DNA of 64,000 bases from assembly GCF_964204645.1 (NCBI RefSeq), contig NC_134030.1, positions 22,404,210-22,468,209 on the forward strand. The letters are read 5' to 3'. Below are positions 37,301-62,069 of the stretch, one piece after another (the first letter of the stretch is position 1; the number at the start of each line of letters is the position of its first letter). This DNA comes from Tubulanus polymorphus. Taxonomy: Eukaryota > Animalia > Nemertea. The position numbers and the translations under genes are program-made. Below the pieces are notes generated by a model. The model ran no database searches, had not been told where the DNA came from, and saw nothing but the letters and a program-made list of their open reading frames with translations.

Positions 37301-40300
37301 TCATTTGGATAAGTCGTCACATTACTGAAGTCATCTCTATTTTTGAGTCTCAATTTATATTTCTAATTCTATTTACTAAGTTTAAGTCATCATTTGGATA
37401 AGTCGTCACATTTCTGAAGTCATCTCTATTTTTGAGTCCCAATTTCTATTTCTAATTCAATTTACTAAGTGTAAGTCATCATTTGGACAAGTTGTCACAT
37501 TTCTGAAGTCATCTCTATTTTTGAGTCTCAATTTGTATTTCTAATTCAATTTACTAAGTGTAAGTCATCATTTGGATTAGTCGTCACATTACTGAAGTCA
37601 TCTCTATTTTCTAGTCTCAATTTGTATTGCGGTGGTGACGCAGTGAAAGGGTTAAAAGGAAGAATTGTTTTGACCTCATGAAATCTTAAAATCTTTAGTT
37701 TTTCAGGGAGTGAGTTGTTGATATAAGAGACTATACGCCCCTCACAAATAGTGAATCATGAATCATGATAAACGAATCGATAAATTCTGTTAATAAATTG
37801 AATAAACACCTCAAACAGCGACAGCGAGGCACGGGCTACATCTAAATTAATAATAATCATGATTTATGATCGAAAAACAGACACGCTGAACAAACATTAT
37901 TGGCCTGTTACCCTGAACACCACGGAGCTCCACTCGCGGTACCTCCTCAGCCCACGGAGCTCCACTCGCGGTACCTCCTCAGCCCACGGAGCTCCACTCG
38001 CGGTACCTCCTCAGCCCACGGAGCTCCACTCGCGGTACCTCCTCAGCCCACGGAGCTCCACTCGCGGTACCTCCTCAGCCCACGTAGCTCCACTCGCGGT
38101 ACCTCCTCAGCCCACGGAGCTCCACTCGCGGTACCTCCTCAGCCCACGGAGCTCCACTCGCGGTACCTCCTCAGCCCACGGAGCTCCACTCGCGGTACCT
38201 CCTCAGCCCACGGAGCTCCACTCGCGGTACCTCCTCAGCCCACGGAGCTCCACTCGCGGTACCTCCTCAGCCCACGGAGCTCCACTCGCGGTACCTCCTC
38301 AGCCCACGGAGCTCCACTCGCGGTACCTCCTCAGCCCACGGAGCTCCACTTGCGGTACCTCCTCAGCCCACGGAGCTCCACTCGCGGTACCTCCTCAGCC
38401 CACGGAGCTCCACTCGGGGTACCTCCTCAGCCCATGGAGCTCCACTCGGGGTACTATGGTTCTTACAAGTTGTAGAAAGTTTCTGAAAATTGGAATGTAT
38501 TTTCCAGACTCTTAAAATCTATTTTTTCTCTCTATGGCTATGGAAAAGAATAGGAAAATTAGAAAATGGTCTCATAACTGGACTCAGTTTTATTCTATTT
38601 TGAATTTTAGGCTGTCTGCCTTAATGTCTACATTTGATAACAAACTCGTATAATTAACCAAGAAAATTGTGACTTTCCAAAAAACATGTTAAAAACCTCC
38701 AGACACTCATCGCATAGATTTCAATTCACACGAAATGAAAGACACTGTCTTTCGAAACCTGATTTTTGTCAATGAAAAAAAAAATTCTGCGAAAAAAAAG
38801 AATAGTCATTGACAACAAATCTCTGGTAAAACCGTAAATATTTCGGCCAATCACGAGTTACCTGTCGTGTGATTGGTTAATTTGGCGTGCGGGAATTCCT
38901 GATCTATCGGACTATTGTCAATAACAACAGAATGAATTATCACTCACTGTTCACTGGTTTCATATTTGATAACAATCAGTTTATTGCTTTTATACAACGT
39001 AATAATAAAAACTGCTCCCAGTTTCAAAGTTCAGAGATATATCTATTAACCCAGTTCCACAGTTCTGAACCCAGTTCAACAGTTCTGGACTCATTTCCAC
39101 AGTTCTGAACCAAATTCCACAGTTCTGGATTCAGTTCAACAGTTCTGCATCTATTTCCACAGTTCTGCATCTATTTCCACAGTTCTGCATCTATTTCCAC
39201 AGTTCTGGACTCAGTTCCACAGTACAGGATCCAGTTCCACAGTTCTGGATCCAGTTCCACAGTTCTGGACTCAGTTCAACAGTTCAGGACTCGGTTCCAC
39301 AGTTCAGGACCCAGTTCTACAGTTCTGGTTCCAGTTTAAGATCCATTTCCACAGCAAATGAATCCAGTTCCTCAGTGCTGGACTCAGTTCCACAGTTCTG
39401 TGATCCTCATTTAATTTTTGTTTAATTTTTCTTAAACCCTGTTTAATTGTTTGATCCACTGCGATCGAGTGTGATCCAATGCGATCCAATGTGATCCAAT
39501 GTAATCCAGTGCGATCAATGTGATCCAGTGCGATCCAATGTGATCCAATGTAATCCAATGCGATCCAATGTGATCCAATGCGATCCAATGTGATCCATTG
39601 TGATCCAGCTCCTATTTTATCGCTCAGTTTTGAGGTTGACTTAGAATTGATAAAAATCTCTTTTCAGAAACTGAAGAAATGAAAGTGATGAAATGTTCAC
39701 CGGCCGACCATGAAAAACTGTGCGAACAATTCCAGAAATTAACGACGAACACCGACGCCAGCCTTGACCCAGAACCGTCCAACAATGACTGCCGAACCAT
39801 CGAGGTCAAGGCCATTACCGTAATAACTGAAGACGCACCCGTAATCTACAATGCGGTCGTCACCAAGGTGAAGCCGGTCGCCGAGGGCGACGATGAATCA
39901 ATTGTTGGTTTATGCGGGGAATTTGAAGCAAAAATGAAAACCGATGAGGATTTTCAGCCGAAGGGCCGTCTGGGCGATGGCGCCAATATCGAGGCCACCG
40001 AACGCCTGCCGCCAGGTAAGGGTACCCACTACGAAGCGATGTTACCGCTGAATCGAAAGGTGCCGGAAAAATCCAAAAATCGCAAAATGATCGCGACCGA
40101 CTCCGGGCAACAGAAGGCCGTCGCCTATGACAACGGAACAATGCCGCTGAAACTTACGCGTACGAACCAAGAACCGGTCGAAAACGAAGAACCGCGAGAA
40201 ATAATCACCGACCTGTCGCCGTGGTTACAATTCGATAATTCGGTGCCGTTTACTAGTAGCAGCAGCAGTAACAATGCGTGTATGTATCCGGGGCAACCGC

Positions 40301-43300
40301 AGTATTGTAATATCAGCCGTTTTAACGCGGTCGCCGAGCTGACAATCCCGACGATCGGCGCTCAAAAACTGGCACCGATCGAGAGTATTTTTTCGACCGA
40401 GTATCAACAACAGCCGCAGCAGACAGCGGACGAGTACCTGAGTACTCACTCGCCAAGCTCCGACGATCAGGGGTACTCGTCCCCGTCGAGTAGCCACGGC
40501 AACGTCAACAGTCCGCTGAGCGACGCCGCGATCATCGAAGATGACGACAAACAGATTCTCGAACTCGTGAAAGAGATGACGGCGAAAAACGACAGCTGGT
40601 TTTTTAATATGACGACTTCGACGAGCGGCGGGCAGACGGCGGCGGCCATAACTCAACAGATTCCAACCGTCAGCAACACCGTAGTACGACCGACGTATAA
40701 TCAGCAGCCATTACGAGCCACCGTCGATTATAACCATCTGATTACGCAACAGTCATGCGCGACGTATCCTTACACCGCCGCCGCTGGGACGATTTACTGC
40801 CAGCAGCAACCGACTAATAATTACACGATGGAAAATAGGCCGATGCCATATTTTAATGTGAATAACAGCAATCAGCTCGGAGTGATGCAGCAGCAGCAGC
40901 AGCAGCAGCAGTACACGATGAACATGATGGGTCCGCGACCTCCCCCACCTCCTTACCCGACGAATAGTATCGTTACGAGCACAATAGGTGGCTCTGGGGG
41001 CTCGATGATAACGTACAATCAAATACCTGAGACTGTGCAGTTACTGACCAATAATCTAACGCAACAACCGCCGATCACCATGACTACGCCCATTCAACAA
41101 ACGCCTGTTTCTACGACGGCGATGACCGGTCAGATGGTCAACGTGCCGGTCAATATGGTTGTGCAGGTGCAGCAGCAGCAGCAGCAGCAGCAGCGGCAGG
41201 CGTCCGCTAACGGTAAAACAACGAAAAAGAATCATCATTCATCGTCGAAACTGACGTCGCTGCCACCTATTGCTCCGAAACCAAACCCACAAATAACCAG
41301 TGAACAGAAGATGTACCAGCAGCAGCAGCACCAGCAGCAGATGTACCAGCAGCAGAACAATGGTGTCTGCTACGGGGCTGAATTCAAGAAACCGTTTCCA
41401 GTGAAACCAACTCCGAAACTAAACATCGCGACCACTACAACAACAACATCAACTCAGAACGGTAAGTTAATGAGTACAGAGAGTGGGAGGAGAATGGAGG
41501 GAAACACAGGGAGGAGGGAGTGGAGCGTAGTGGAGGGGAACTAATGAGTAGGCCTACAGGGAGTACTATTCTAGTCATTCTAGTCCGCTTTCTGGTACAA
41601 GAGGCAGAGCTAGATCTGAGGGTCTCACCTCATACGTGTATGAGTCACTTACAGTTTTTGCAATATTATGTTATGGGTAAATTCCAAACCGAAAAAGGTC
41701 AAGAATTTCCTATAAAGGTCCGCGATGATTTTGTACTGATTGCACGGACATGTTTTGTCCTCCAGGGCAGCTAGATTTGAGGGGCCTAAGACATGAACGA
41801 GATAGTTTTTGAAACAGGAAAATTTTACCGTTTGCCGGAATTTCTCGTTTAATTCTGCTTTCATTTTACACAAAAAACATTTTCAATAATTGGGCCGCTG
41901 AATATTTCGAAAAAAATAACATTTATTTGTGGAATAAAAATCTGCATTCCTCGCTCGATCACTGGGTTTTTGTTATTGAAAATGTGATAATTCACTAGGG
42001 GGAATTCCCCTCGGTAATCTGGATGACCTTTATTACGGGAAACCCTCTCCGGTATGAATGAGGTTTTATTCTGTGAGGTTTTATTTCGTGTTTGTGTTTG
42101 GTGATGGATTCACTCATGTTACGCTTCGTCTGCTCATTGTAGTTGCGAAACTACCGACGCCACCTACGATGCCGGAGATTATCCTCACGAAACTCGACCT
42201 GGCTCGCGCTCAAGTCGCCAAGATGTCGATGGAGCGTATGATCGAACCGGACTCTGAGGGAGAATGGTAAGTGTTAGTTGATAACCCCCCTCTCATCCCT
42301 CTTCCCCTCCCCCTCTCATCCCCCTCCCCCTCTCATCCCCCTCTCCCTCTCATCCCCCTCCCCTCTCATCCCCCTCTCATCCCCAGCAAACATTTAATCA
42401 TATACTATTCTTATTTCCTAATATCTTTAAATATCTTCTTTTTTGATTTTGAAATTTTACGTAATTTTGTTTGCATTGTTTGTTATACTCGTTTTCCACC
42501 CCTTCTAAAATCCATAGTAACCAGAGTTGCACGGAATTTTCATTTTTACATTGTTAGATTAGCTATAGAACTCAGATGGTCTGAGAGACTGGTCTACAAG
42601 CTTAATCCACAATTGTGCGACTGTGGCCCCTGCTGTTTTAACCCCCTTCGTTCGACCCTCAAAGAAATTCTATTCAAATTACGAAATAGCTGATCAAAGA
42701 TTTTGAAACATTTTTCAGGATCCCTACGATTCCTTGACAACAACTTCTTAAACAAAAATGTTTTTCAATATCCTCCTCGAATAATCCTTGAATTTGAGCG
42801 AAATGCTCGAAAGTCCTTGAAACAACTCCTTGAATTTTGAGAAATTGGCAATATTAGAAAATCTTTAGGTTATTATGCACACAGATTCCAACGAATTAAA
42901 TGGTAAAGATAAACAGTACTGATTTAGGAGGAGTCTATGGTGGGATATGAAAGTGATTCTGAATTTAGGAGGAGTCTACAGTAATTGGGATATGAAAGTG
43001 ATTCTGACGCTTCCACGAAATTTGAAATTTTCTCGTTGAAAACTCCTTATCTCCAGGAATGACTGAAATCCTGTTTTTCCCCTATTTAAACATCTTTTAA
43101 TCTTGAAAGATGTTTTCACGATGCGCTGTTGTTAACAACTGTTTCTATTTGTTGTTTTCACAGGACGATTCATGGAATCATCGATTCCGAAGAGGTTTTA
43201 TTCCTGCAGGCGTACCTCGAGCGTTTACGACGAATCGACCAAAAAATGCCGGGAATCGAAGCGAAAATTCTCAGCGCCAAATCGGACGACTTCGTACGTA

Positions 43301-45805
43301 GAATTCCCGATTTCTCAAATTCATACGTTCTGTATACGTTCACCAGGGGGCGTTGACTATTGAAATTGAGTTTTTACTAAACCCCCGGGGCCGGTTGCAT
43401 CGTCGTGGCTTAAGTTCAAAAGTGGTCTTAAATCTTAAGACTGGTCTGAAGTCTTAAGATTGGCTATAGAACTAAGTTCGTCTTAGACTGGTCTTAAATC
43501 TAAGCCATGTCTATGCAATCTGCCTGTGGTTCTGTATACATTCACCAGAGGGCATTGAATATTGAAATAGAATTCTAAGAGCTCCAGTTCTACAAACATT
43601 CACCAGGGGGCGTTAGAGAATGAAATTGAGTTTTATAAACCCACTGATTCTTTGTATGATCACCAGGGGGCGTTAGATAATGAAATTGAGTTTCATAAAC
43701 CCACTGATTCTTTGTATGTTCACCAGGGGGCGTTATTTATTGAAATTGATTTTCTATTGGCAGACGCCGCTGCACCTTGCCGTTCTGATGTACAATAACT
43801 GCGACATGGTGCGACTGTTGCTCGAATACGGAGCCAGCCCGAATGAGTTGATCCGGGTTCGTGACGCGTGCGGTAACGGTCACTGGAAGCGTCTGCTCCA
43901 TGTAGCCGCCAGCGGAGGGTTAGAATGGTTCCCGGTCTTACAGGTTCTCGCCAAGTTCCAGGGAACTAATAAAGAGGAGAAGGATTCGCATGGTAGGTTC
44001 AATAAAGGTGGTGCCACGCTACGGCAATCTCTTAAATGGGAGGCTGTCAAATATGTCAAAATATCTGAAAGGAACAGAGTCTCTACTGTACCATCCAACT
44101 CAGATATCACTGTCAATCAAGAATATCTGACTTGAGCGGAGTCTGCTGTACCATACAACTCAGATATCACTCTCAAGTCAAAAGATCTGACTTGAGTGGA
44201 GTCTACTGTACCATCCAACTCGGATATCACTCTCAAGTCAAAGGATCTGACTTGAGCGGAGTCTACTGTACCATCCAACTCAGATATCACTCTCAAGTCA
44301 AAAGATCCGACTTGAGCTGAGTCTACTGTACCATCCAACTCAGATATCACTCTCAAGTCAAAAGATCTGACTTGAGCGGAGTCTACTGTATCATCCAACT
44401 CAGATATCACTCTCAAGTCAAAAGATCAGACTTGAGCGGAGTCTACTGTATCATCCAACTCAGATATCACTCTCAAGTCAAAAGATCAGACTTGAGCGGA
44501 GTCTACTGTATCATCCAACTCAGATATCACTGTCAATCGAAAATATCTTACTTGAGCGGAGTCTACTGTACCATCCAACTCAGATATCACTCTCAAGTCC
44601 AAAGATCAGACTAGAGCGGAGTCTACTGTATCATCCAACTAAGATATGACTCTCAAGTCAAATGATCTGAATCTTGAGCGGAGTCTACTGCATCATCCAA
44701 CTCAGATATCACTCTCAAGTTAGCAGATCCGACTTGAGCGGAGTCTACTGTATCATCAAACTCAGATATCACTGTCAAGTCAAAAGATCTGACTTGAGCG
44801 GAGTCTACTGTATCATCCAACTCAGATATCACTCTCAAGTCAACAGATCTGACTTGAGTCTACTGTATCAATAAATCATCGACCGCCCCATATCTTCTAA
44901 TATTTGATCATTTCATGTAAATATATTGAAGGTTTGACTGCTCTTCACTGCGCTATCAAAGAACACGCACAACCGAAAACTGACAGGAAAACAGGACGCG
45001 AGATTCTGAATGACAGTACACCAACTGTGTGTATGCTACTGAACTGTGGAGCCAGCGCTTTTCAAAAGGTATCTTTTATACTCATGAAACTTTATAAATT
45101 ACGGGAGTCAAAATTTGGACACTTTTGCCAATTGTACAAAAATAAGTAAACTATTTCGTAGATTCTTATGGGAGGCCCAGAGAAAATTCTGTTTGTTGAA
45201 ACAAATGCGAATTTCAAGAATGAGTTGCCCAGTTGCAAGTTTAATCCATTTCATTTTGCCTTTCTGGGCAACTTGACATTTTAGAGGGTGGGTGCCCATC
45301 CCCTGCACCCTCCCTTCAGATCCACCATTGAATCAGAAGCCCAGAAAATCTAAAATGTAGAGGATTAATTTGAATAAATTTGCATATTTAATTAGGACGA
45401 TAAATCTGGACAGACGGCAATTCATTTTGCCGTGGCAACGCAGGACTACCGTCTCGTACATGAGGTTCTCCGCATTACGCCAAACATAGCGGAGGTAATA
45501 AATATTCCTCGCATGGATAAGAACACGCCGCTCCACCTGGTGGCCGGAATGGAATTCAGAACGCCAGACGAGCACGTGCACATGGTTCAGATGTTGCTGC
45601 ATTACGGGGCCGAGCGTGAATGCAAAAACCAAGAGGGGAAATATCCGTATCAAGTCGCCAAAGGCAACCAACAGGTCGGTTTGAAAAGAAAACGTATTCG
45701 AAATTTCGTAAATACTCGATTCTAATAAAAGATGGCGCTGCTGCTACATTTTTCTTTCGTTTGCACATTCAGATCGAAACCCTGTTGAATTTGAAGAATC
45801 GATGA
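34390..45805 (+). CDS. Nuclear/atypical IkB-family ankyrin protein (IkB-zeta/IkBNS/Bcl-3-like); exons 34390-34495, 39668-41461, 42143-42266, 43164-43293, 43764-43992, 44932-45068, 45396-45674, 45773-45805
   Basis: Long Q/P/S/T-rich N-terminus followed by C-terminal ankyrin repeats (TPLHLAV, LLHVAA, GLTALHCAI, DDKSGQTAIHFAV, NTPLHLVA, GAERECKNQEGKYP). The pre-ankyrin helix LDLARAQVAKMSMERMIEPDSEGE resembles IkB-zeta/IkBNS. Exon 1 is inferred from a phase-1 match. The exact ortholog is unresolved. Confidence 0.8.
37225..37628. repeat. ~89-bp tandem array (related unit near 15025-15110)
   Basis: Recurrent GTCACATTACTGAAGTCATCTCTATTTTTGAGTCTCAATTT. Confidence 0.9.
37920..38454. repeat. 32-bp GC-rich minisatellite (~16.5 copies) in IkB intron 1
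   Basis: Unit CCCACGGAGCTCCACTCGCGGTACCTCCTCAG. Confidence 0.98.
39050..39606. repeat. 20-bp array derived from the MITE A TIR (39050-39400) and a 10-bp GATCCAAT array (39460-39606)
   Basis: CAGTTCCACAGTTCTGGA repeats; GTGATCCAAT repeats. Confidence 0.85.
41998..42046. promoter_or_regulatory. Paired intronic NF-kB sites
   Basis: Palindromic GGGGAATTCCCC (41999-42010) and GGGAAACCCT (42037-42046) in intron 2 of an IkB-family gene. Confidence 0.6.
43387..43524. mobile_element. ~135-bp MITE family C (copy at 20052-20178)
   Basis: GGGGCCGGTTGCAT..TCGTGGCTTA ... TAAGCCATG.CTATGCAA inverted termini and a shared interior at two loci. Confidence 0.65.
44078..44870. repeat. 60-bp tandem array (~13 copies) in an IkB intron
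   Basis: Unit CAGATATCACTCTCAAGTCAAAAGATCTGACTTGAGCGGAGTCTACTGTACCATCCAACT. Confidence 0.97.
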
Positions 45806-52728: not shown

Positions 52729-53813
52729 GTGGTGACTGACATAGGATTTAAGTTTGTCTGGTCAGTGTGGTGACCATTTCGCTGTGGTGACCAGTCGGGC
52801 GTGGTGACTGGTGATCAGTCAGGTGCGGTAACTGGTGGCCAGTCAGGTGTGGTGTCTGGTGATCAGTCAGGTGTCGTAACTGATGGCCTGTCAGGTGTGG
52901 TGAGGAGCTCAAACTACTCCCACTTCAATTCTTAATGATGAAAAAAGTTTCTGTTTCTGCCAGAGATTTAAAGTAAGGCCCTTTTGTCGTAAATTGTCTA
53001 AAATCAGAGTTTGAATTCACTCTTGATACCAGATACCTTGATATAATCTCAAACTGGATCGAAACCTCAGTTGCCCTTTAGATACTGAATGTATCTGTGT
53101 GGTTTTGTACACGCCGCGACTCCTATACCCGTCAGGAGACAAGACTATTCTCCTATACCCGTCAGGAGACAAGACTATTCTCCTATACCCGTCAGGAGAC
53201 AAGACATCCTCCTATACCCGTCAGGAGACAAGACTATTCTCCTATACCCATCAGGAGACACCGTGGTTGAGAAAATGGTCCCATATGTGTAACAAGTGGG
53301 AACTGATGCATTTGTGGCTACTGTTTCATGTTTATTTTCGACTCATTGAGACATGATGATTCAACCCCCTGTTACCGAAAGATTTGGAGTCTTTTCTAAA
53401 ACAAAGAATAACCCTAGAATTATATATACACTGGAAAACAATATCCATAGACTAGAACTCTCGTCAACAAAACCCCGGAGCGCATAGTTGATTTAAAATT
53501 TGTCTTTTTATTTTAATATTTCAAAAAGCAGTAACGAACAACATTGACTTCAGATTTAGGATAGAATATTCTATGATAATCCAGCAACAGATAAACCCTA
53601 TATTCGCTGAACAACCAACTTTCTTATCTGGATGATTAATGGGAATCAATGAAATTAAAAAATGCTAAAAAAGCAAGAACGAAATTCATCGTTTTAGAAA
53701 ACAGATTCGTTATCAAATAAAGCTTTTGAATCGACAACAATCGATTACTTTTTTGATTAAACCTAAAACCCAAAATTCGTTTTTGCATGAATAGATCCTG
53801 AAAATTAGACTAC

Positions 53814-54210
53814 GTAGAACCAGGGAGGTGGGAGTGAACGAAGAACCAGGGAGGTGGGAGTGAACGTAGAACCAGGGAGGTGGGAGTGAACGTAGAACCA
53901 GGGAGGTGGGAGTGAACGTAGAACCAGGGAGGTGGGAGTGAACGTAGAACCAGGGAGGTGGGAGTGAACGTAGAACCAGGGAGGTGGGAGTGAACGTAGA
54001 ACCAGGGAGGTGGGAGTGAACGTAGAACCAGGGAGGTGGGAGTGAACGTAGAACCAGGGAGGTGGGAGTGAACGTAGAACCAGGGAGGTGGGAGTGAACG
54101 TAGAACCAGGGAGGTGGGAGTGAACGTAGAACCAGGGAGGTGGGAGTGAACGTAGAACCAGGGAGGTGGGAGTGAACGTAGAACCAGGGAGGTGGGAGTG
54201 AACGAAGAAC
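53814..54210. repeat. 26-bp G-rich minisatellite (~15 copies); a separate 32-bp array at 53120-53260
   Basis: Unit GTAGAACCAGGGAGGTGGGAGTGAAC. Confidence 0.97.
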
Positions 54211-55264
54211 GAAGTTAATCAGAGACCCGAGAGGCTGCGCGCGCAGGTTACTTGATCAGTATATAATAGTATGGTCTGGAAATTTTGGTGCATAATCCTG
54301 AATTCGCTAAAAGTTCAAGTTCAAATCTATTTCATAGAATGCTTAAGTTTAGTCGTCGATAGAATTATTCATTCAAAACAAACTAGTGAGGAATAATGTG
54401 TGGAATTTGACTCTAGTTTATTCCTCGCATGCCACAGTTAGATAGCGAGGCCGTGTTTCATCTCAACCGTTCAGTGCTGCCCCTATGAATGACGATAGCG
54501 GAATTTCTGTGAACTAAGATCTCCCCGATTTCATCAACGTCAATGATTTATCTGGCACGCGAGTATAATGCTAGTTCTCGTTTTTTCCGCTGTCGTTATA
54601 CGCAGCGGCAGCACCGGACGGTCGAGATCCGACCTCCTCGCTATTTTTACGGTGGCGGGTGAATTGTTTCAATCATTATGATTCCATCAACGCTTAATGC
54701 GTTATTTCATAAAATACATCTTTGAATGAATTCTTAAAGCTTCTTTTGATTAGAAATGATTCTCAATTTGTGTTTTTTTTCGAACTAGACGCTTCACTTC
54801 ATACTCATCTAATCATTTCTGAATCCAGCGTGTCTGAGTGGTTGTCGTGTAAAATTAATTGAGTTCGGCAAGAATTTTATTGATATTTTATAGATAGGAG
54901 ATATGAACAAGTTAACAGTCAATTCTTGGAGAGCGCTATAAAATACCGATAAGTCACCCGATCACTTGATCGACACAAACGAAATTGAACTCATTTTTTT
55001 AAATCATCAAAACAAACTCGATATTCATAATCTAAATCACGTGTTAATATTACGTCTGTATTTAACGACGACGACCTATTTTTGAAACGGTAAAATTCTT
55101 ACCGAACTGGTTTTTGCCGCGCAACCCGCACTTCGTACAGTTACTATTTATAGACGCATATCACGGAACCCTGGAAATACCACTTGATTGTTCTTATTGG
55201 AAACTTATGCAACGCCTAAAAGGTATTAGTTTGTTTTTGGTGGGCGTATGCTGAACGTCTGAAC

Positions 55265-57056
55265 ATGGCTACCAGTAATCCTGATCGCTTTGAACTTTCC
55301 GTTTCTTTCCAAGGACGTCGCGTTAATGTTTGGTCCGATGAGGATAATGTCTACAGGACGATACAAAATTACTTTTATCAGCCGTTGTTTAATTTGGAAT
55401 CAGATCGGATAACTGTGGATGGAAATTTATTACAACTAGATATAATTATGTGGAGTGAAGAATTAGAGAATGTAATTAAACACGAACTGAACACCATTTA
55501 CACAGGACATGTAATAGCGGTGCAAATGATGCCGTTTGATGAGGTAAAAATCTATCATTTTCATTTTCACTTTCATCGTCATCCGCGTATGATACTAGAT
55601 GGGTTACCACTGCGAGGTGAGAGACAAATAAAACTATAGTTTTTTTTTCTTTCAGGTGAAATTATCATGGAGAGGAGCGCCACCTGGTGTCGAGATACCG
55701 GATCATCCCATCCCGTTCAATCACCAACCTCAGAATCATGTGTTTGTCGTTAGATGTGAAAGTAAAGAAATGTGTGAAATCTACAAATCGCGACTTCAAC
55801 AATCACCGCAATCGATAGGTTCGGGTCTTGTGATCGGTGCTAGTCGTCACGGGAACGAATACGTGTTTAGAGTGAACACTGAACCGATCATTGGAGCGCA
55901 GACAGTTCGACCAGACATTGATGAATGTCACGATCATGTTAAACTGTTTCATGATAATTTAGTAAATCAATTCTGTCAAATGAAACACACTTTAGAAACA
56001 GTTGAAGAGAGATTGAACCAGGGCTGTACTGAACACCAGCTTGTAGCATTGGAAGCAAAACTGAACAAAACTATCGATGACGCGATAGGGGGAACTACTG
56101 GTGACGTCATAGGGAGAATTGATGAATTAGAAAGATCTACTGATGATCTCACATGCCATATGGAACATGACGTCATCGATTCATTGATGATCAATACACA
56201 GGTTCAGATAGACTTCTCACCCGTTCTAGTGACGTCACTACCTGGTGGGCACGTGGGTCGACAGTCACGTGTAATATGTGCGGACTGGGGGTCCAGCAAT
56301 ATTTATTACATGGATGATGATAACGTAATGAAGAGATACGTTAAGTGTAATGGCCGTGTTATAGGACTCCTTAATGATAATTACGGACATCTGTTTGTAC
56401 TCGTGAAGAAAAAGACGAAATTCTACCTGAGAAAATATAAAAATCGAGACAAACTGATTCAAGATGGTATCAATGATATCCTGCCTCATTTTACAACCCT
56501 AGTAATCAGTGGTGACAATATCTATATACAGTCAGGGAGGGACATTCGTGTTTTACATTTACTAGAAAACCCTAAAAACAGTTTGATAGATAGAAACCGA
56601 GTGAATAAATATCAGCTCCCGGATGGAGAGTACAGTCATTTCAATTGTTTCACTGTCGACTCACGGGGACGGATGTTCGTTTATTGTAATCGTACGAATA
56701 GTTTTTTATTTTTAACAGCAGAAGCAAAACCGATCAGTTCTATTGATATCAAAGATTGCGGGCTTACATTCGATCCAAGGCGGGGACGCCCGTGCATTAT
56801 AAGTGATAAACACGTATTATTATCGGTAAACCCTGGATACCCTGATTGCAGAGGAGCTGTGATGAGTTTCAGATATAATGATCAGGGGTTCATAGATCGC
56901 CCGCGTATAGTACTGAACTCAACAGACAGTGTGACATGTCAGATATATCAAGTGCGTGACAGCAACACTGTAGCTATCCGTCACTATGATGACAGAAATG
57001 ATCGACACTCATTGAGAATTTATAATATAAACAATATACATGCTCTTACGAAATAA
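55265..57056 (+). CDS. Uncharacterised 559-aa protein, paralog A (N-terminal alpha/beta domain, coiled coil, predicted NHL-like beta-propeller); exons 55265-55543 and 55656-57056
   Basis: Two ORFs joined in frame by GAG|GTAAAA...TTTCAG|GTG. Heptad-like central region; beta-rich C-terminus with FTVDSRGRMFV. A second intact copy lies 5 kb downstream. Confidence 0.8.
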
Positions 57057-57593
57057 AATCAGTTTACATGTAGTTTACCGAACTATACAGACAGTGTGGT
57101 GTGTGACAGTAACACTGTAAGTGCTGTCTATCGCTATGATTAAGTAATAAACATGAATCACTTGTATAGAGTCAACAAGAGACCAGCCGGTTTGAAGTAT
57201 AGAGACTTTATAAAACCGGTGTACAATCGAGTAGAACAGATTTGACCTCCGTAATCAATCATCCTGATTTCATACCGATATTGATTAACAACAAACGATA
57301 AGTTTCTAAAGTTTATTACTGTAATAATAAAAAGATGAGGAAAGTACGTGTCACGTGACATATTCTTAGCTCTATAAGGCTGAAAAATGATACCATGTTT
57401 CTCCAAATTGGCCGGGTCAATTTTGTAAACTGCAATAAGATTTGTAATCAGTTTATTTCTATAGCTTATATGGGTCTGTTCTGGCAAGCCTGAATATGAT
57501 TTTTTTTAAAGTTATGTACAGGGTAGATATAGGCAGCCGGTCGGGTCAATTTTTAAACTCAGCGGACGTAGAGACAAGGTATCATTTTAATAC

Positions 57594-57821
57594 GATAAAA
57601 ACCCACTATCTACAGATTAAAAGAATTTAAAAACAAGAATTTATTTATTCAATCTAAAATATATAGAATACACGACGTTTCGATCTCACCCTAGAAATCA
57701 TCGCCAGGTGTGATGATCTCTAGGGTGAGATCGAAACGTCGTGTATTCTATATATTTTAGATTGAATAAATAAATTCCTGTTTTTAAATTCTTTTAATCT
57801 GTAAATAGTGGGTTTTTTATC
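57594..57821. mobile_element. Penelope-like retroelement terminal-repeat remnant in inverted arrangement, with a minimal hammerhead motif
   Basis: Near-perfect inverted arms of ~108 bp. The minus strand reads ACAC-CTGGCGA-T-GATTTC-TAGGGT-GAGATC-GAAAC-GTC-GTGT. Confidence 0.7.
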
Positions 57822-58549
57822 TTATTATCCGTTCACCACGTTTCAGTGCACAGGTTATCGTTCTATAAGGTATAATTTTATTAGCGTAAAATGATAGTTA
57901 ATAAAAGTTCGTAGAGTTAATTTTGATGATCTTCAACTTTACAGGAAATACATGTATCTTATCGCCATTAAGAAGCAACTCAGTTAGAAATGTTATCTTT
58001 AAGAAAACTAGGAGTTCATAGGGACACTTGGATGGAGTGCTCGACGACTCCAATATTCAACAACCCGGTGAACGAATACCAGTAACCACTTAACCTTAGA
58101 ATTCATCACAATAATCTGCACGTGGATCTGATACATTGACAGTGACCGATTCTTGTGGGCGGGTAAGAGGGGGACTGCATGGTCCACGGTTATAAACAGT
58201 AGAACCATCTGGTCGCTCGGAAGGCTTCCACCTATAAGGCGCTGATGATGTATATTGTCTTCTAGGGTATTCAATTTGTTGTCTTAACGAATAATTTTTG
58301 TATTATAGAACCTGCCATGAGCTAGATTTAATTGCGGTGACAAAAAGTGCATGGTGCCAATTTATATCTGGAAATACCATGTGGGCTAAAAAGGTGCACT
58401 TTTAGAAGATTTAACTTTGACTCATTTATTGTAAATTGGTGAAAGAGTATAAACACCAGATTCGACAAAATAAATGAATTTCATTTTGATAGTTCTATAA
58501 TATTTCGACACTTTTTTGTTCAATTTTTGCGCAACAATGTTGGTTTTAT

Positions 58550-59032
58550 TCAAATCTCGGAATCATCGAGCTGGCCATTATCCTGATGATCTTGTTGCTC
58601 CTCATCCTGATGATCTTGTTGCCCCTCATGTTGATCATCCTGTAGCCCCTCATACCTCTCACCACGTTGCCCCTCATTGTGATCATCCAGCAGCCCCTCA
58701 TGGTGATCGTCCTGCTGCACCTCATGATCATCCTGCTGCCCCTCACCCTGATCACCATCATGCTTCCCCTCACCAGTCACCTTGACATATTGTATTAACT
58801 CAATTTTCAAATTCTGCTGGAAATGATTTTGAGCCGCATTTGAGGTTTCATCCTGATCACGATCTTCAAATGGGATTGGCCCAGACTGATCAGCACCATC
58901 AGTTTGTGATCTCAGGGTCGCTTCTTCAGCATCTGTATCTTCGGCTGCTGCAGCAGGTGCGTGACTCGTGCTACATCGAAAATTCACCACTACCAGAAAA
59001 ACGACGAATTTCAGGGTTGTCATCAGATACAT
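58550..59032 (-). CDS. Putative small acidic His/Gln/Asp-rich repeat protein, possibly secreted
   Basis: 160-aa ORF with a hydrophobic N-terminus (MTTLKFVVFLVVVNF) and degenerate 8-residue repeats (DDHxEGQQ). The hydrophobic start could instead be a polypyrimidine tract and acceptor. Confidence 0.4.
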   Translation of the reverse strand: MYLMTTLKFVVFLVVVNFRCSTSHAPAAAAEDTDAEEATLRSQTDGADQSGPIPFEDRDQDETSNAAQNHFQQNLKIELIQYVKVTGEGKHDGDQGEGQQDDHEVQQDDHHEGLLDDHNEGQRGERYEGLQDDQHEGQQDHQDEEQQDHQDNGQLDDSEI

Positions 59033-60292
59033 TAATTATTCGAGACCAAGTAAAGAATGACTGAAATTATAAACAAACTAAATCTCAGTTGTGTTCAGCA
59101 TATATAAATATACAATATTGAGAGGGTGTGGTCTATCTGATATGTAGCGAGTGTGACAATGACTGTCTTATGCGGCACTGGCATGTAGGTAATTCTAACA
59201 TACTCTGGCAAGTGAGGAATTTAACTTTTCTCATTTTACGATCATCTCCCGCCAGGGATTCGAACCCGCTACGCTAAAGCCGTTCCCATCACGACTGGTC
59301 CTTACCAGCCGCAAGAACTGGCCTAAGCAAACTGATATAACACTGTTCCCTACGAAACAAGATCTGACACTTTAGTCATGTTATTTGAATATCTAATAGT
59401 AAAATCAATAACCCGTTACTTGAACACGTACCTTACTACGTCACACTCTCGCGGGCGATAGGTAAACAACACTCACCTTCAGCTTCCGCGAGTTGTTACT
59501 TTAAACGTCTGTCTATGTCAACTCCGAATAACACCATCTGTTCCCCATAAAATACAATTCAAATTCTTTTTTAAACAGTCATAACTGTCATAACATCGGA
59601 TAGTGATCGCAATATAACTATAAATTTTTTCAGTTAGATAAATGAGAAACTTACGAGTTCTCTAATTCTGCAGCAGCCGTTTCTACGATATCATCATCAG
59701 TCAGCAGATCGAAGATAACTAGACACTGATAATTCAACCACACATTTATGAAGATGAAAATTCTATACCATATGTGAGTAGCCTCTACAATTGAGACCCC
59801 GAACGTGAATTATTCGCTCGAACTGTTAAACCACGAAATAAGAAGTGTAACCTGTCGTGTCGTTCGAACTAAGTATATTCAGAGTAAACAAGACGAAATC
59901 AAGTTTACCCAGTAATTGGTTGATTAACACCATCGATCTCCACAAGAGTCTCTGCACCGAGCATCGAACTGTTCGACTATATTATACAACGCCTAAGTGT
60001 ATTTACATAATTTCTGGTGTTGGAGGTAACAACATTTAAAAATGGTTTCATTTGTTTATTTTTCTAAATCACGTGTTTGTATTACATCTGTATTTAACGA
60101 CGACGACCTATTTTTGAAACGGTAAAATTCTTACCGAACTGGTTCTTGCCGCACCCGCCTTTTGTATAGTTATAATTCATAGACGCTAAACAGAACCCTG
60201 GAAATATCACCCGATTGTTCCGATATAAAAGTTATGCAACGCCCAAGTTGTGTATTTAGTTTATATTTGATGGTCATCAATAACGCGTCAAC

Positions 60293-62069
60293 ATGGCTAC
60301 CAGTAATCCCGATCGCTTTGAACTGTCCGTTCCTTTCAAAGGGCGTCGCGTTAATGTTTGGTCTGACGAGAATAATGTCTACAGGACGATACAAAATTAC
60401 TTTTATCAGCCGTTGTTTAATTTGGAATCTGATCGGATAACTGTGGATGGAAATCTATTACAACTTGATATAATAATGTGGAGTGAAGAATTAGAGAATG
60501 TTATTAAACACGAACTGAACACCATTTACACAGGACATGTAATAGCGGTGCAAATGATGCCGTTTGATGAGGTAAAAATCTATCATTTTCACTTTTACTT
60601 TCATCGTCACCCGCGTATGATACTAGATGGGTTTCCACTGCGAGGTGAGAGACAAATAAAAATGTGGTTTTCTATTTCAGGTGAAATTAGAATGGAGACA
60701 AACGCCACCTGGTGCGGAGATACCGCATCATCCCATCCCGTTCAATCATCAACCTCAGAATCACGTGTTTGTCGTTAGATGTGAAAATGAAGAAATGTGT
60801 GAAGTCTACAAATCGCGACTTCAACAATCACCGCAATCGATAGGTTCGGGTCTTGTGATCGGTGCTAGTCGCCACGGGAACGAATACGTGTTTAGAGTGA
60901 ACACTGAACCGATCATTGAAGCGCAGACAGTTCGACCAGACATTGATGAATGTCATGATCATGTTAAACTGTTTCATGATAATTTAGTAAATAAATTCTG
61001 TCAATTGAAACTGTCAGTAGAACAACTTGAAGAGAGATTGAACCGGTGCTGTACTGAACAACAACTTGTAGCATTGGAAGTAAAATTGAACAAAACTATC
61101 GATGACGCGATAGGGGGAACTATTGGTGATGTCATAGGGAGAATTGATGAAGTGGAAAGATCTACTGATAACGGCATATTTAATTTAGAACTTGACGTCA
61201 TTGATTCATTGATGACCAGTCAACAAGTTCTGACAGACTTCAGACCAAACCTAGTGACGTCATTACCTGGTGAGCAGACGGGTCGACAGTCACGTATAAT
61301 ATGTGCTGACTGGGAAACCAGTGATATCTATATTAATGCAGTGAATAAATACATAACATGTAGTGGCCGTGTACTAGGACTCGCAACTGATAGTGACGGG
61401 TGTCTATTTGTACTCGTGTGGAAAAACACGAAATTCTACCTGAGAAAATATAAATATCAACAGAAACTGTTACAAGAAGATATTACTAGTATCGTGTCTA
61501 GATTTCAAACCTTAGTAATCAGTGGTCATAGTGTCTACGTGCAGTCAGAAAGAGACGTTCATGTTTTACGTTTGCTAGAAAACCCTGTAAACAGTTTGAT
61601 TGATAGAAACCGAGTGAAGAGATATCAGCTCCCGGATGGGGATTACCGTTTTGTAAAGTGTTTCACTGTCGACTCACGGGGACGGATGTTTGTTTATTGT
61701 ATTCGTTCAAAAAGATTATTATATTTAACAGCAGAAGCGGAATTAATCAGTGTTATTCATATGATGAATTGCGGGCTTACATTCGATCCACATGCGGGAT
61801 CCCCGTGTGTTATAAGTAATAAACATGTATTACTATCGGTAAACCCAGGAAACTGTGATAACAGAGGATCTGTTATTAGTATCAGATATAATAATCAGGG
61901 GTTCATAGATCGCCCGCGTATAGTACTGAACTCTACAGACAGTTTGACATGTGAGATACATCAAGTGTGTGACAGCAACACTGTAGCTATCCGTCACTAT
62001 GATAACAGTAATGAACGACATTCATTGAGAATTTATGATATAAACACTGTTCCTGCTCATAGGCAATAA
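60293..62069 (+). CDS. Uncharacterised 555-aa protein, paralog B; exons 60293-60571 and 60681-62069
   Basis: Same exon structure as 55265-57056 and alignable over its whole length; only in-frame indels between the copies. Confidence 0.8.

Follow-up and report, generated by a model that had tools for sequence, protein, structure and literature searches.

An NHL-like propeller gene pair of the nemertean Tubulanus polymorphus: candidate intracellular sensors from a large array-amplified family

TRIM-NHL proteins, which include Brat, Mei-P26, Thin/TRIM32, TRIM2/3 and LIN-41, are conserved and few in number. In the Apaf-1 system, the propeller and the caspase are found on separate proteins, which are bridged by a CARD and a STAND ATPase. 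Here, we describe two neighbouring genes of the nemertean Tubulanus polymorphus whose products look, on their sequences, like undescribed intracellular sensors, and which share features with both of these systems. They are located in a stretch of 64,000 nucleotides (G000:C6:22404210-22468209), referred to below as the window; coordinates given without a contig name are positions in it, and both genes are read on its forward strand. A third point of comparison is provided by the diversified recognition families of other animals, such as the fish finTRIM/B30.2 proteins, bivalve C1qDC proteins, snail FREPs and the NLR expansions of invertebrates (see also PMC6835236). Many invertebrates gain recognition diversity without antibodies through expanded, fast-evolving receptor families of this kind, and each new one represents another sensor design.

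The pair resembles TRIM-NHL proteins in that a coiled coil is followed by a six-bladed NHL-type propeller, and these proteins are its best structural matches. It differs from them in lacking a RING, a B-box and the Pfam NHL match, with an unrelated and unnamed N-terminal domain (N-domain) in place of the ligase half, and its family is species-restricted, arranged in tandem arrays and fast-evolving. With the finTRIM, C1qDC, FREP and NLR families it has in common tandem growth, a combination of constant and variable modules, and replacements concentrated on a surface that would be the binding one; unlike them, its variable part is an NHL-like propeller and its constant part a new N-domain. The likeness to Apaf-1 and to WD40-linked caspase or metacaspase proteins lies in a beta-propeller sensing module tied to a caspase, which in this family takes the form of a direct fusion to Peptidase_C14. 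Unlike Apaf-1, the family lacks both NB-ARC and CARD and has an NHL-like propeller in place of a WD40 one, and neither window gene carries a caspase of its own.

An earlier note on this DNA had proposed two intact two-exon genes of 559 and 555 amino acids (aa), and open reading frames (ORFs) and GT..AG introns confirm both. Gene 1 consists of exon 1 (55265-55543, an ORF ending at a GT donor; residues 1-93, the first half of the N-domain), a 112-bp intron (55544-55655) and exon 2 (55656-57056; residues 94-559 and the stop codon). Its product of 93 + 466 residues is 100% identical to the uncharacterised NCBI model LOC141907375 (P0001, 559 aa), with the same splice. P0001 served as the full-length query, and exon products were otherwise searched separately. 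Gene 2 consists of exon 1 (60293-60571; residues 1-93), a 109-bp intron (60572-60680) and exon 2 (60681-62069; residues 94-555 and stop), giving 93 + 462 residues.

The duplicated block (55031-57056 versus 60063-62069) has 85.7% DNA identity and stops at the stop codon. The duplication of about 230 bp of upstream DNA, which had also been noted, corresponds to segments of 234 bp (55031-55264, a putative promoter) and 230 bp (60063-60292) before the ATG, with 82% identity. Read off the sequence, a TATA-like run is present in each (55145-55152 and 60171-60176), ~115 bp before the ATG; all paralogs share this start, and there is no upstream exon. Exon 1 has 95.3% DNA identity between the genes, and the reported difference at 3 of 93 residues is confirmed. 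The introns are similar, with 89.9% identity and one 3-bp indel, although the description of them as nearly identical was a little generous. Exon 2 has 85% DNA and 73% protein identity, with one 4-residue indel in the stretch that the note had quoted (residues 312-315), inside the B-C loop class of the propeller.

Beyond the stop codon of gene 1, a relic (57099-57152, forward strand) resembles the 3' end of the propeller coding sequence (80% identity over 55 bp to 61965-62016). Genes of an array on contig C12 have an open last-blade fragment of 66-74 aa ~240 bp past the stop (L009:2787-2987, L012:2772-2969 and L014:2764-2964). The relic and these fragments may represent a scar left by duplication, or else a last exon that is used alternatively.

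AlphaFold2 (AF2) models and Foldseek agree with the three-part build that had been suggested, in which a conserved folded N-domain precedes a helical stalk and then a propeller of six blades. In gene 1, these parts cover residues ~8-170 (55265-55886, intron included), ~185-260 (55929-56156, with a single 13-residue cysteine-containing unit) and 265-555 (56169-57041), respectively; the propeller of gene 2 lies at about 61194-62054, with bounds transferred from gene 1 by protein alignment. The AF2 model of P0001 places stalk helices at residues 188-213, 219-236 and 241-257, a predicted coiled-coil segment preceding the C-terminal domain. Paralogs have weak matches to coiled-coil families in Pfam, and those with long stalks match a Galaxin-like repeat model through their paired-cysteine repeats.

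The C-terminal domain, modelled for P0001 with family sequences, is all-beta, with 24 strands and a predicted local distance difference test score (pLDDT) of about 88, and the model shows a strongly diverged six-bladed fold of NHL type. Foldseek ranks the Brat NHL domain first (1q7f, E 1.2e-9), with Thin, Mei-P26 and TRIM2 behind it, down to 4e-8; template modelling (TM) scores over the target are 0.60-0.70, with a root-mean-square deviation of 4.7-6.7 and 11-16% identity. At the sequence level, Pfam NHL (PF01436) is undetected in the window proteins (E<=1) and in nine full-length paralogs (E<=0.1), although PF01436 picks up 26 canonical repeats in other parts of the Tubulanus genome. When the family profile is compared with PDB sequences, the eight best rows are all NHL-type, with E 0.04 or worse, and its propeller aligns with three Tubulanus TRIM-NHL propellers over 147 columns (hhalign, 76.7%, E 2.1e-5). 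On these grounds we name it an NHL-like propeller, with the fold established and homology to NHL probable. Core propeller residues are invariant even between paralogs of 27-33% identity.

Pfam gives no RING, B-box, NACHT or NB-ARC ATPase match in the exon products of both genes (E<=1) or in the nine full-length paralogs; the only matches there are the weak coiled-coil and Galaxin-repeat ones, which arise from the cysteine repeats. The gene 1 and gene 2 proteins have no hydrophobic leader; translation begins directly in the folded N-domain. The absence of a signal peptide, RING and B-box reported in the earlier note is thus upheld, and a full-length match to a characterised family, the outcome that it had named as speaking against novelty, was not obtained.

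The N-domain comprises ~165 aa and is predicted to be alpha+beta (P0001 residues 1-185 with a 48-sequence alignment: pLDDT 89.8, predicted TM score 0.81). Read from the strand/helix string of the model, its topology would fit a beta-alpha-beta-beta-alpha-beta core (residues 55-157) to which hairpins are added on the N-terminal side. Pfam has no match in the N-terminal 170 residues. A profile search (hmmsearch) of 1.84 billion representative proteins yielded about 45 distant relatives at profile positions ~11-170 (E 4e-13 to 1e-3), of which the named ones belong to the tardigrades Paramacrobiotus metropolitanus and Hypsibius exemplaris; the others are encoded on short contigs of metagenomic or unidentified eukaryotic origin. 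Tubulanus-only and tardigrade-only profiles of the domain align with each other (hhalign, 99.1%, E 1e-18). Residues P40, W63, F123 and C127 are invariant in the 48-sequence alignment, which confirms the N-terminal motif that had been pointed out in the earlier note. On this sequence evidence, the N-domain is a real, unnamed domain that occurs in invertebrates of different phyla.

Like the proteins of Tubulanus, those of tardigrades and unidentified eukaryotes contain a homologous N-domain, with the same P, W, F and C invariant, and behind it a long middle region that leads to a binding-type end. They differ in that this end is an Xlink, phage-tail Collar or C1q domain instead of a propeller, and many have a signal peptide or membrane anchor. 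In the tardigrade proteins the N-domain is followed by Xlink or Collar, and in P0033 by C1q (a weak Pfam match). Locus L042 (GCA_031546405.1 JAVQIL010028119.1) has a C1q ORF 1.1 kb downstream of its N-domain gene, and in both L042 and L034 (a Logan SRR11509473 contig) N-domain genes lie between small C1q-domain ORFs or a short way upstream of them, a layout that suggests N-domain+C1q genes in a C1q-rich genome.

Structure comparisons of the N-domain did not link it to a known fold. Foldseek against PDB gave no match at E<=0.001, the best VIA wide match had Z 6.9, within background, PDB sequence searches found nothing significant and a search of the ESM atlas by features gave no usable match. 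Among predicted structures, the model does have matches, namely ESM-atlas clusters whose members are hypothetical bacterial proteins 720-783 aa long (TM 0.57-0.61) and an uncharacterised Medusavirus stheno protein of 417 aa (query TM 0.57, Foldseek E 1.6e-6). An identity as TRADD-N was dropped: it is not among the best 50 VIA wide matches listed, and Pfam TRADD_N does not match. Weak matches to Cas6b via PADLOC (E about 1e-3) were taken as chance or as a common ferredoxin-like core.

The two genes, presented in the earlier note as a tandem pair, do not stand alone: they are diverged tandem members of a large, unnamed and array-amplified family. Searching the genome in six frames with exon 2 returned 132 matches, and the family probably comprises 50 or more loci. 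One tandem array occupies C8:670340-710607 with a spacing of about 4.35 kb, a second lies on C12 at 2.00-2.06 Mb, and more copies and fragments are present on C6 near the window. Several of the matches are fragments or copies with stop codons; most copies keep open frames, with in-frame indels. Eight paralogs align full-length to the pair protein with 56-72% identity, covering the N-domain, the cysteine-repeat stalk and the propeller, and the exon 1/exon 2 boundary is identical at 20 loci. Stalk length varies among paralogs, from one to more than eight copies of the 13-residue unit. A transposon origin of the family was rejected because the copies form regular tandem arrays; the sole transposase link is one tardigrade gene model.

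All matches with E<1e-30 among the 1.84 billion representative proteins (profile search) are from Tubulanus, and word-based and exhaustive protein searches found no propeller-bearing family member elsewhere. When distant paralogs or the N-domain+C1q group were the queries of further word-based homolog searches, P0015 and P0100 were the only additions, and literature searches found no description of the family. Several single frames hold more than one propeller (G000:C40:20558-22459, 771 aa; C8:759802-762720, 1068 aa; C11:8502474-8508836, 2257 aa). A further ORF of 1309 aa on the reverse strand (positions 2001-5930 of L033, G000:C2:4701824-4707957; compare P0020, 1435 aa) ends in a distant propeller (26-29% identity). 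In front of this propeller it encodes a long coiled coil and three near-identical acidic repeats, each ~150 aa long, and it has no N-domain.

The propeller is also found joined to caspases. Pfam places Peptidase_C14 after the propeller in P0019 (E 3e-67), P0022 (E 6e-57) and P0026 (partial, followed by CUB), and finds no caspase domain in either window gene. The motifs SHG and QACRG are kept in P0019, whose propeller is 75-80% identical to those of the C8 array, while the Cys loop of P0022 is altered. At C8:3716485-3717609 and C11:13881404-13882702, one uninterrupted frame joins the propeller to the first 56-60 caspase residues, so the fusion is real and not a gene-model artefact. Similar propeller-caspase loci are found at C8:929428-930558, C8:2265634-2266764, C8:2305559-2306758, C8:3083267-3084394 and C8:3230669. 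In total, the same-exon fusion, which reuses the propeller in the position of a caspase prodomain, occurs at at least six loci outside the window.

We compared the ratio of nonsynonymous to synonymous substitution rates (dN/dS, w) along the two genes of the pair. It rises from 0.07 in exon 1 (dN 0.014, dS 0.204) to 0.59 in codons 1-100 of exon 2 (0.048 and 0.081), 0.69 in the stalk (0.144 and 0.208) and 0.79 in the propeller (0.205 and 0.259), and nonsynonymous and synonymous changes number 14:14 in the N-domain versus 110:38 in the propeller (Fisher P=0.013). As had been proposed, the propeller evolves much faster than the N-domain. Since exon 1 combines a dS of 0.20 with a dN of 0.014, it is purifying selection and not gene conversion that keeps it constant; silent divergence is lower in the intron and in the 5' portion of exon 2, where conversion over part of the sequence is thus possible. 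A C-terminal w well below 1 together with a conversion-driven N-terminal identity, which the earlier note had allowed for, is therefore not what we find.

The strong contrast between head and propeller also holds across the family. Among 20 paralogs, 43 pairs have a propeller dS<0.15; their median w is 1.10 in the propeller, 0.14 in the N-domain part of exon 2 and 0.39 in exon 1, and the closest pairs reach 2-3 in the C8 and C12 arrays alike. From a maximum-likelihood tree, 13 phylogenetically independent pairs were chosen, seven young and six older, with propeller-wide w from 0.34 to 2.95. In the young pairs, w exceeds 1 on the predicted top face (2.27; 83 nonsynonymous to 10 synonymous changes, P=0.007) and is 0.77 in bottom loops and 1.04 in strands; the corresponding values in the older pairs are 0.78, 0.42 and 0.51. 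Indel events cluster in the B-C loops (10 events), and 57 of the 275 propeller sites have no replacement. Compared within the same pairs of the 20 paralogs, dS is 0.07-0.09 in the 5' parts versus 0.24 in the propeller, which points to some concerted evolution of the constant half too.

Taking these results together, we estimate at roughly 55% the probability that the family is a germline-encoded, diversified intracellular recognition system, in which targets are met by the top face of the propeller, the stalk multimerises, the N-domain couples and the propeller-caspase genes provide an output. The top face would bind variable targets, either proteins or RNAs, with parasites, viruses or mobile elements as possible sources. 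Multimers would form through the stalk, the constant N-domain would couple binding to a conserved downstream partner or assembly, and the propeller-caspase genes would allow a sensor of this kind to trigger cell death directly. An immune, cell-death or anti-parasite role is plausible.

Several observations weigh against this recognition system. The propeller ratio of the window pair is below 1, its top-loop enrichment is non-significant (P=0.17), and only one of the 13 independent pairs has a propeller-wide w above 1 (P=0.009, uncorrected). The ratio drops with divergence, a trend that late removal of slightly deleterious changes also produces. The loop classes, with B-C and D-A as top, were derived from the strand order of the model and standard propeller topology, not from coordinates, and all ratios are Nei-Gojobori (NG86) estimates, which ignore transition bias and recombination. 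Many N-domain relatives outside Tubulanus carry signal peptides, which means that the domain is not confined to cytosolic proteins. Its conserved residues include none that look catalytic, which makes an output role for it a guess; with no known fold either, the effector function that the earlier note had assigned to it is conjectural.

Much of the same variation could be produced by neutral birth-and-death, with unequal crossing-over growing the arrays, a relaxed propeller in redundant young copies and conversion partly homogenising the 5' half, so that the variation would be non-adaptive. A propeller-wide w of about 1 in young pairs and 0.3-0.8 in older ones fits this explanation, as do the 5' dS below that of the propeller in the same pairs, a dS of only 0.03-0.08 in exon 2 codons 1-90 of the window pair and the presence of fragments and stop-codon copies. 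We nevertheless regard it as unlikely: most copies retain open frames and in-frame indels, a fifth of the propeller's sites (57/275) stand unreplaced, the core residues stay invariant at 27-33% identity, and top loops are above 1 in the very pairs whose bottom loops are at 0.77. The low dN of exon 1 at a dS of 0.20 is likewise a mark of selection and not of conversion.

Somewhat more doubtful is a role of the proteins as RNA-binding regulators of TRIM-NHL type in which the ubiquitin-ligase half was lost or was never present, with a top face that binds RNA motifs as in Brat and LIN-41 and has diversified in step with many RNA targets, for instance RNAs of transposons or viruses, or germline mRNAs. 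In structure, the closest matches are indeed RNA-binding NHL domains (Brat with RNA, Mei-P26 and TRIM2), a coiled coil followed by NHL corresponds to the C-terminal half of TRIM-NHL proteins, and the weak sequence matches are all NHL-type, including the hhalign match to the Tubulanus TRIM-NHL propellers (76.7%, E 2e-5). However, Pfam NHL is undetected in any member, identity to NHL structures is 11-16%, and a propeller-caspase fusion suits a sensor better than an mRNA regulator. The two explanations overlap, as RNA could be a ligand of a recognition system as well. It is highly improbable that these are secreted or structural worm proteins (related to mucus, proboscis or toxins), with the cysteine-repeat stalk forming disulfide-linked fibres and the propeller acting as a lectin-like adhesive head. 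Relatives of the N-domain in tardigrades and on other contigs often have signal peptides and lectin-type ends such as Xlink, C1q or Collar, and the stalk repeats contain paired cysteines, with the Galaxin-like model match in long-stalk paralogs. The Tubulanus proteins, in contrast, have neither a leader nor an upstream exon and share a start downstream of the TATA-like run, and their propeller also occurs fused to caspases, enzymes of the cytosol.

If the family is a recognition system, it would add an NHL-type propeller as a variable binding part, a new domain that is conserved across phyla and swapped among several binding heads, and a direct link from propeller to caspase, through which the coupling of recognition to cell death could be tested in a little-studied phylum. 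The N-domain, as a well-modelled fold without a solved relative, merits a name and a structure. More tentatively, the head-stalk-propeller proteins and the propeller-caspase genes may together form an undescribed innate-immune or cell-death system of animals with a hypervariable, germline-diversified NHL-like sensor; the N-domain would then serve as a signalling or assembly module of a new type, wired to a propeller, C1q, Xlink or tail collar depending on the phylum.

Between the two genes, the reverse strand carries a 160-aa ORF (58550-59032) with a hydrophobic N-terminus and short repeats rich in Q, D, H and E, overlapped on the forward strand by a His/Pro-rich ORF (58516-58785); neither has a Pfam match. 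Elsewhere in the window, the forward strand contains a single-copy 621-aa ORF (39679-41544) that is Gln-rich, with low-complexity runs and no Pfam match, in a stretch of higher G+C (0.47-0.49), and an ankyrin-repeat ORF (43680-44135; Pfam E 1.3e-9), which is probably an exon of a larger gene. Upstream of gene 1, there are two tandem repeats, one with a 30-bp unit in 4-5 copies (53117-53260) and one with a 26-bp unit in about 22 copies of up to 99% identity (53734-54314).

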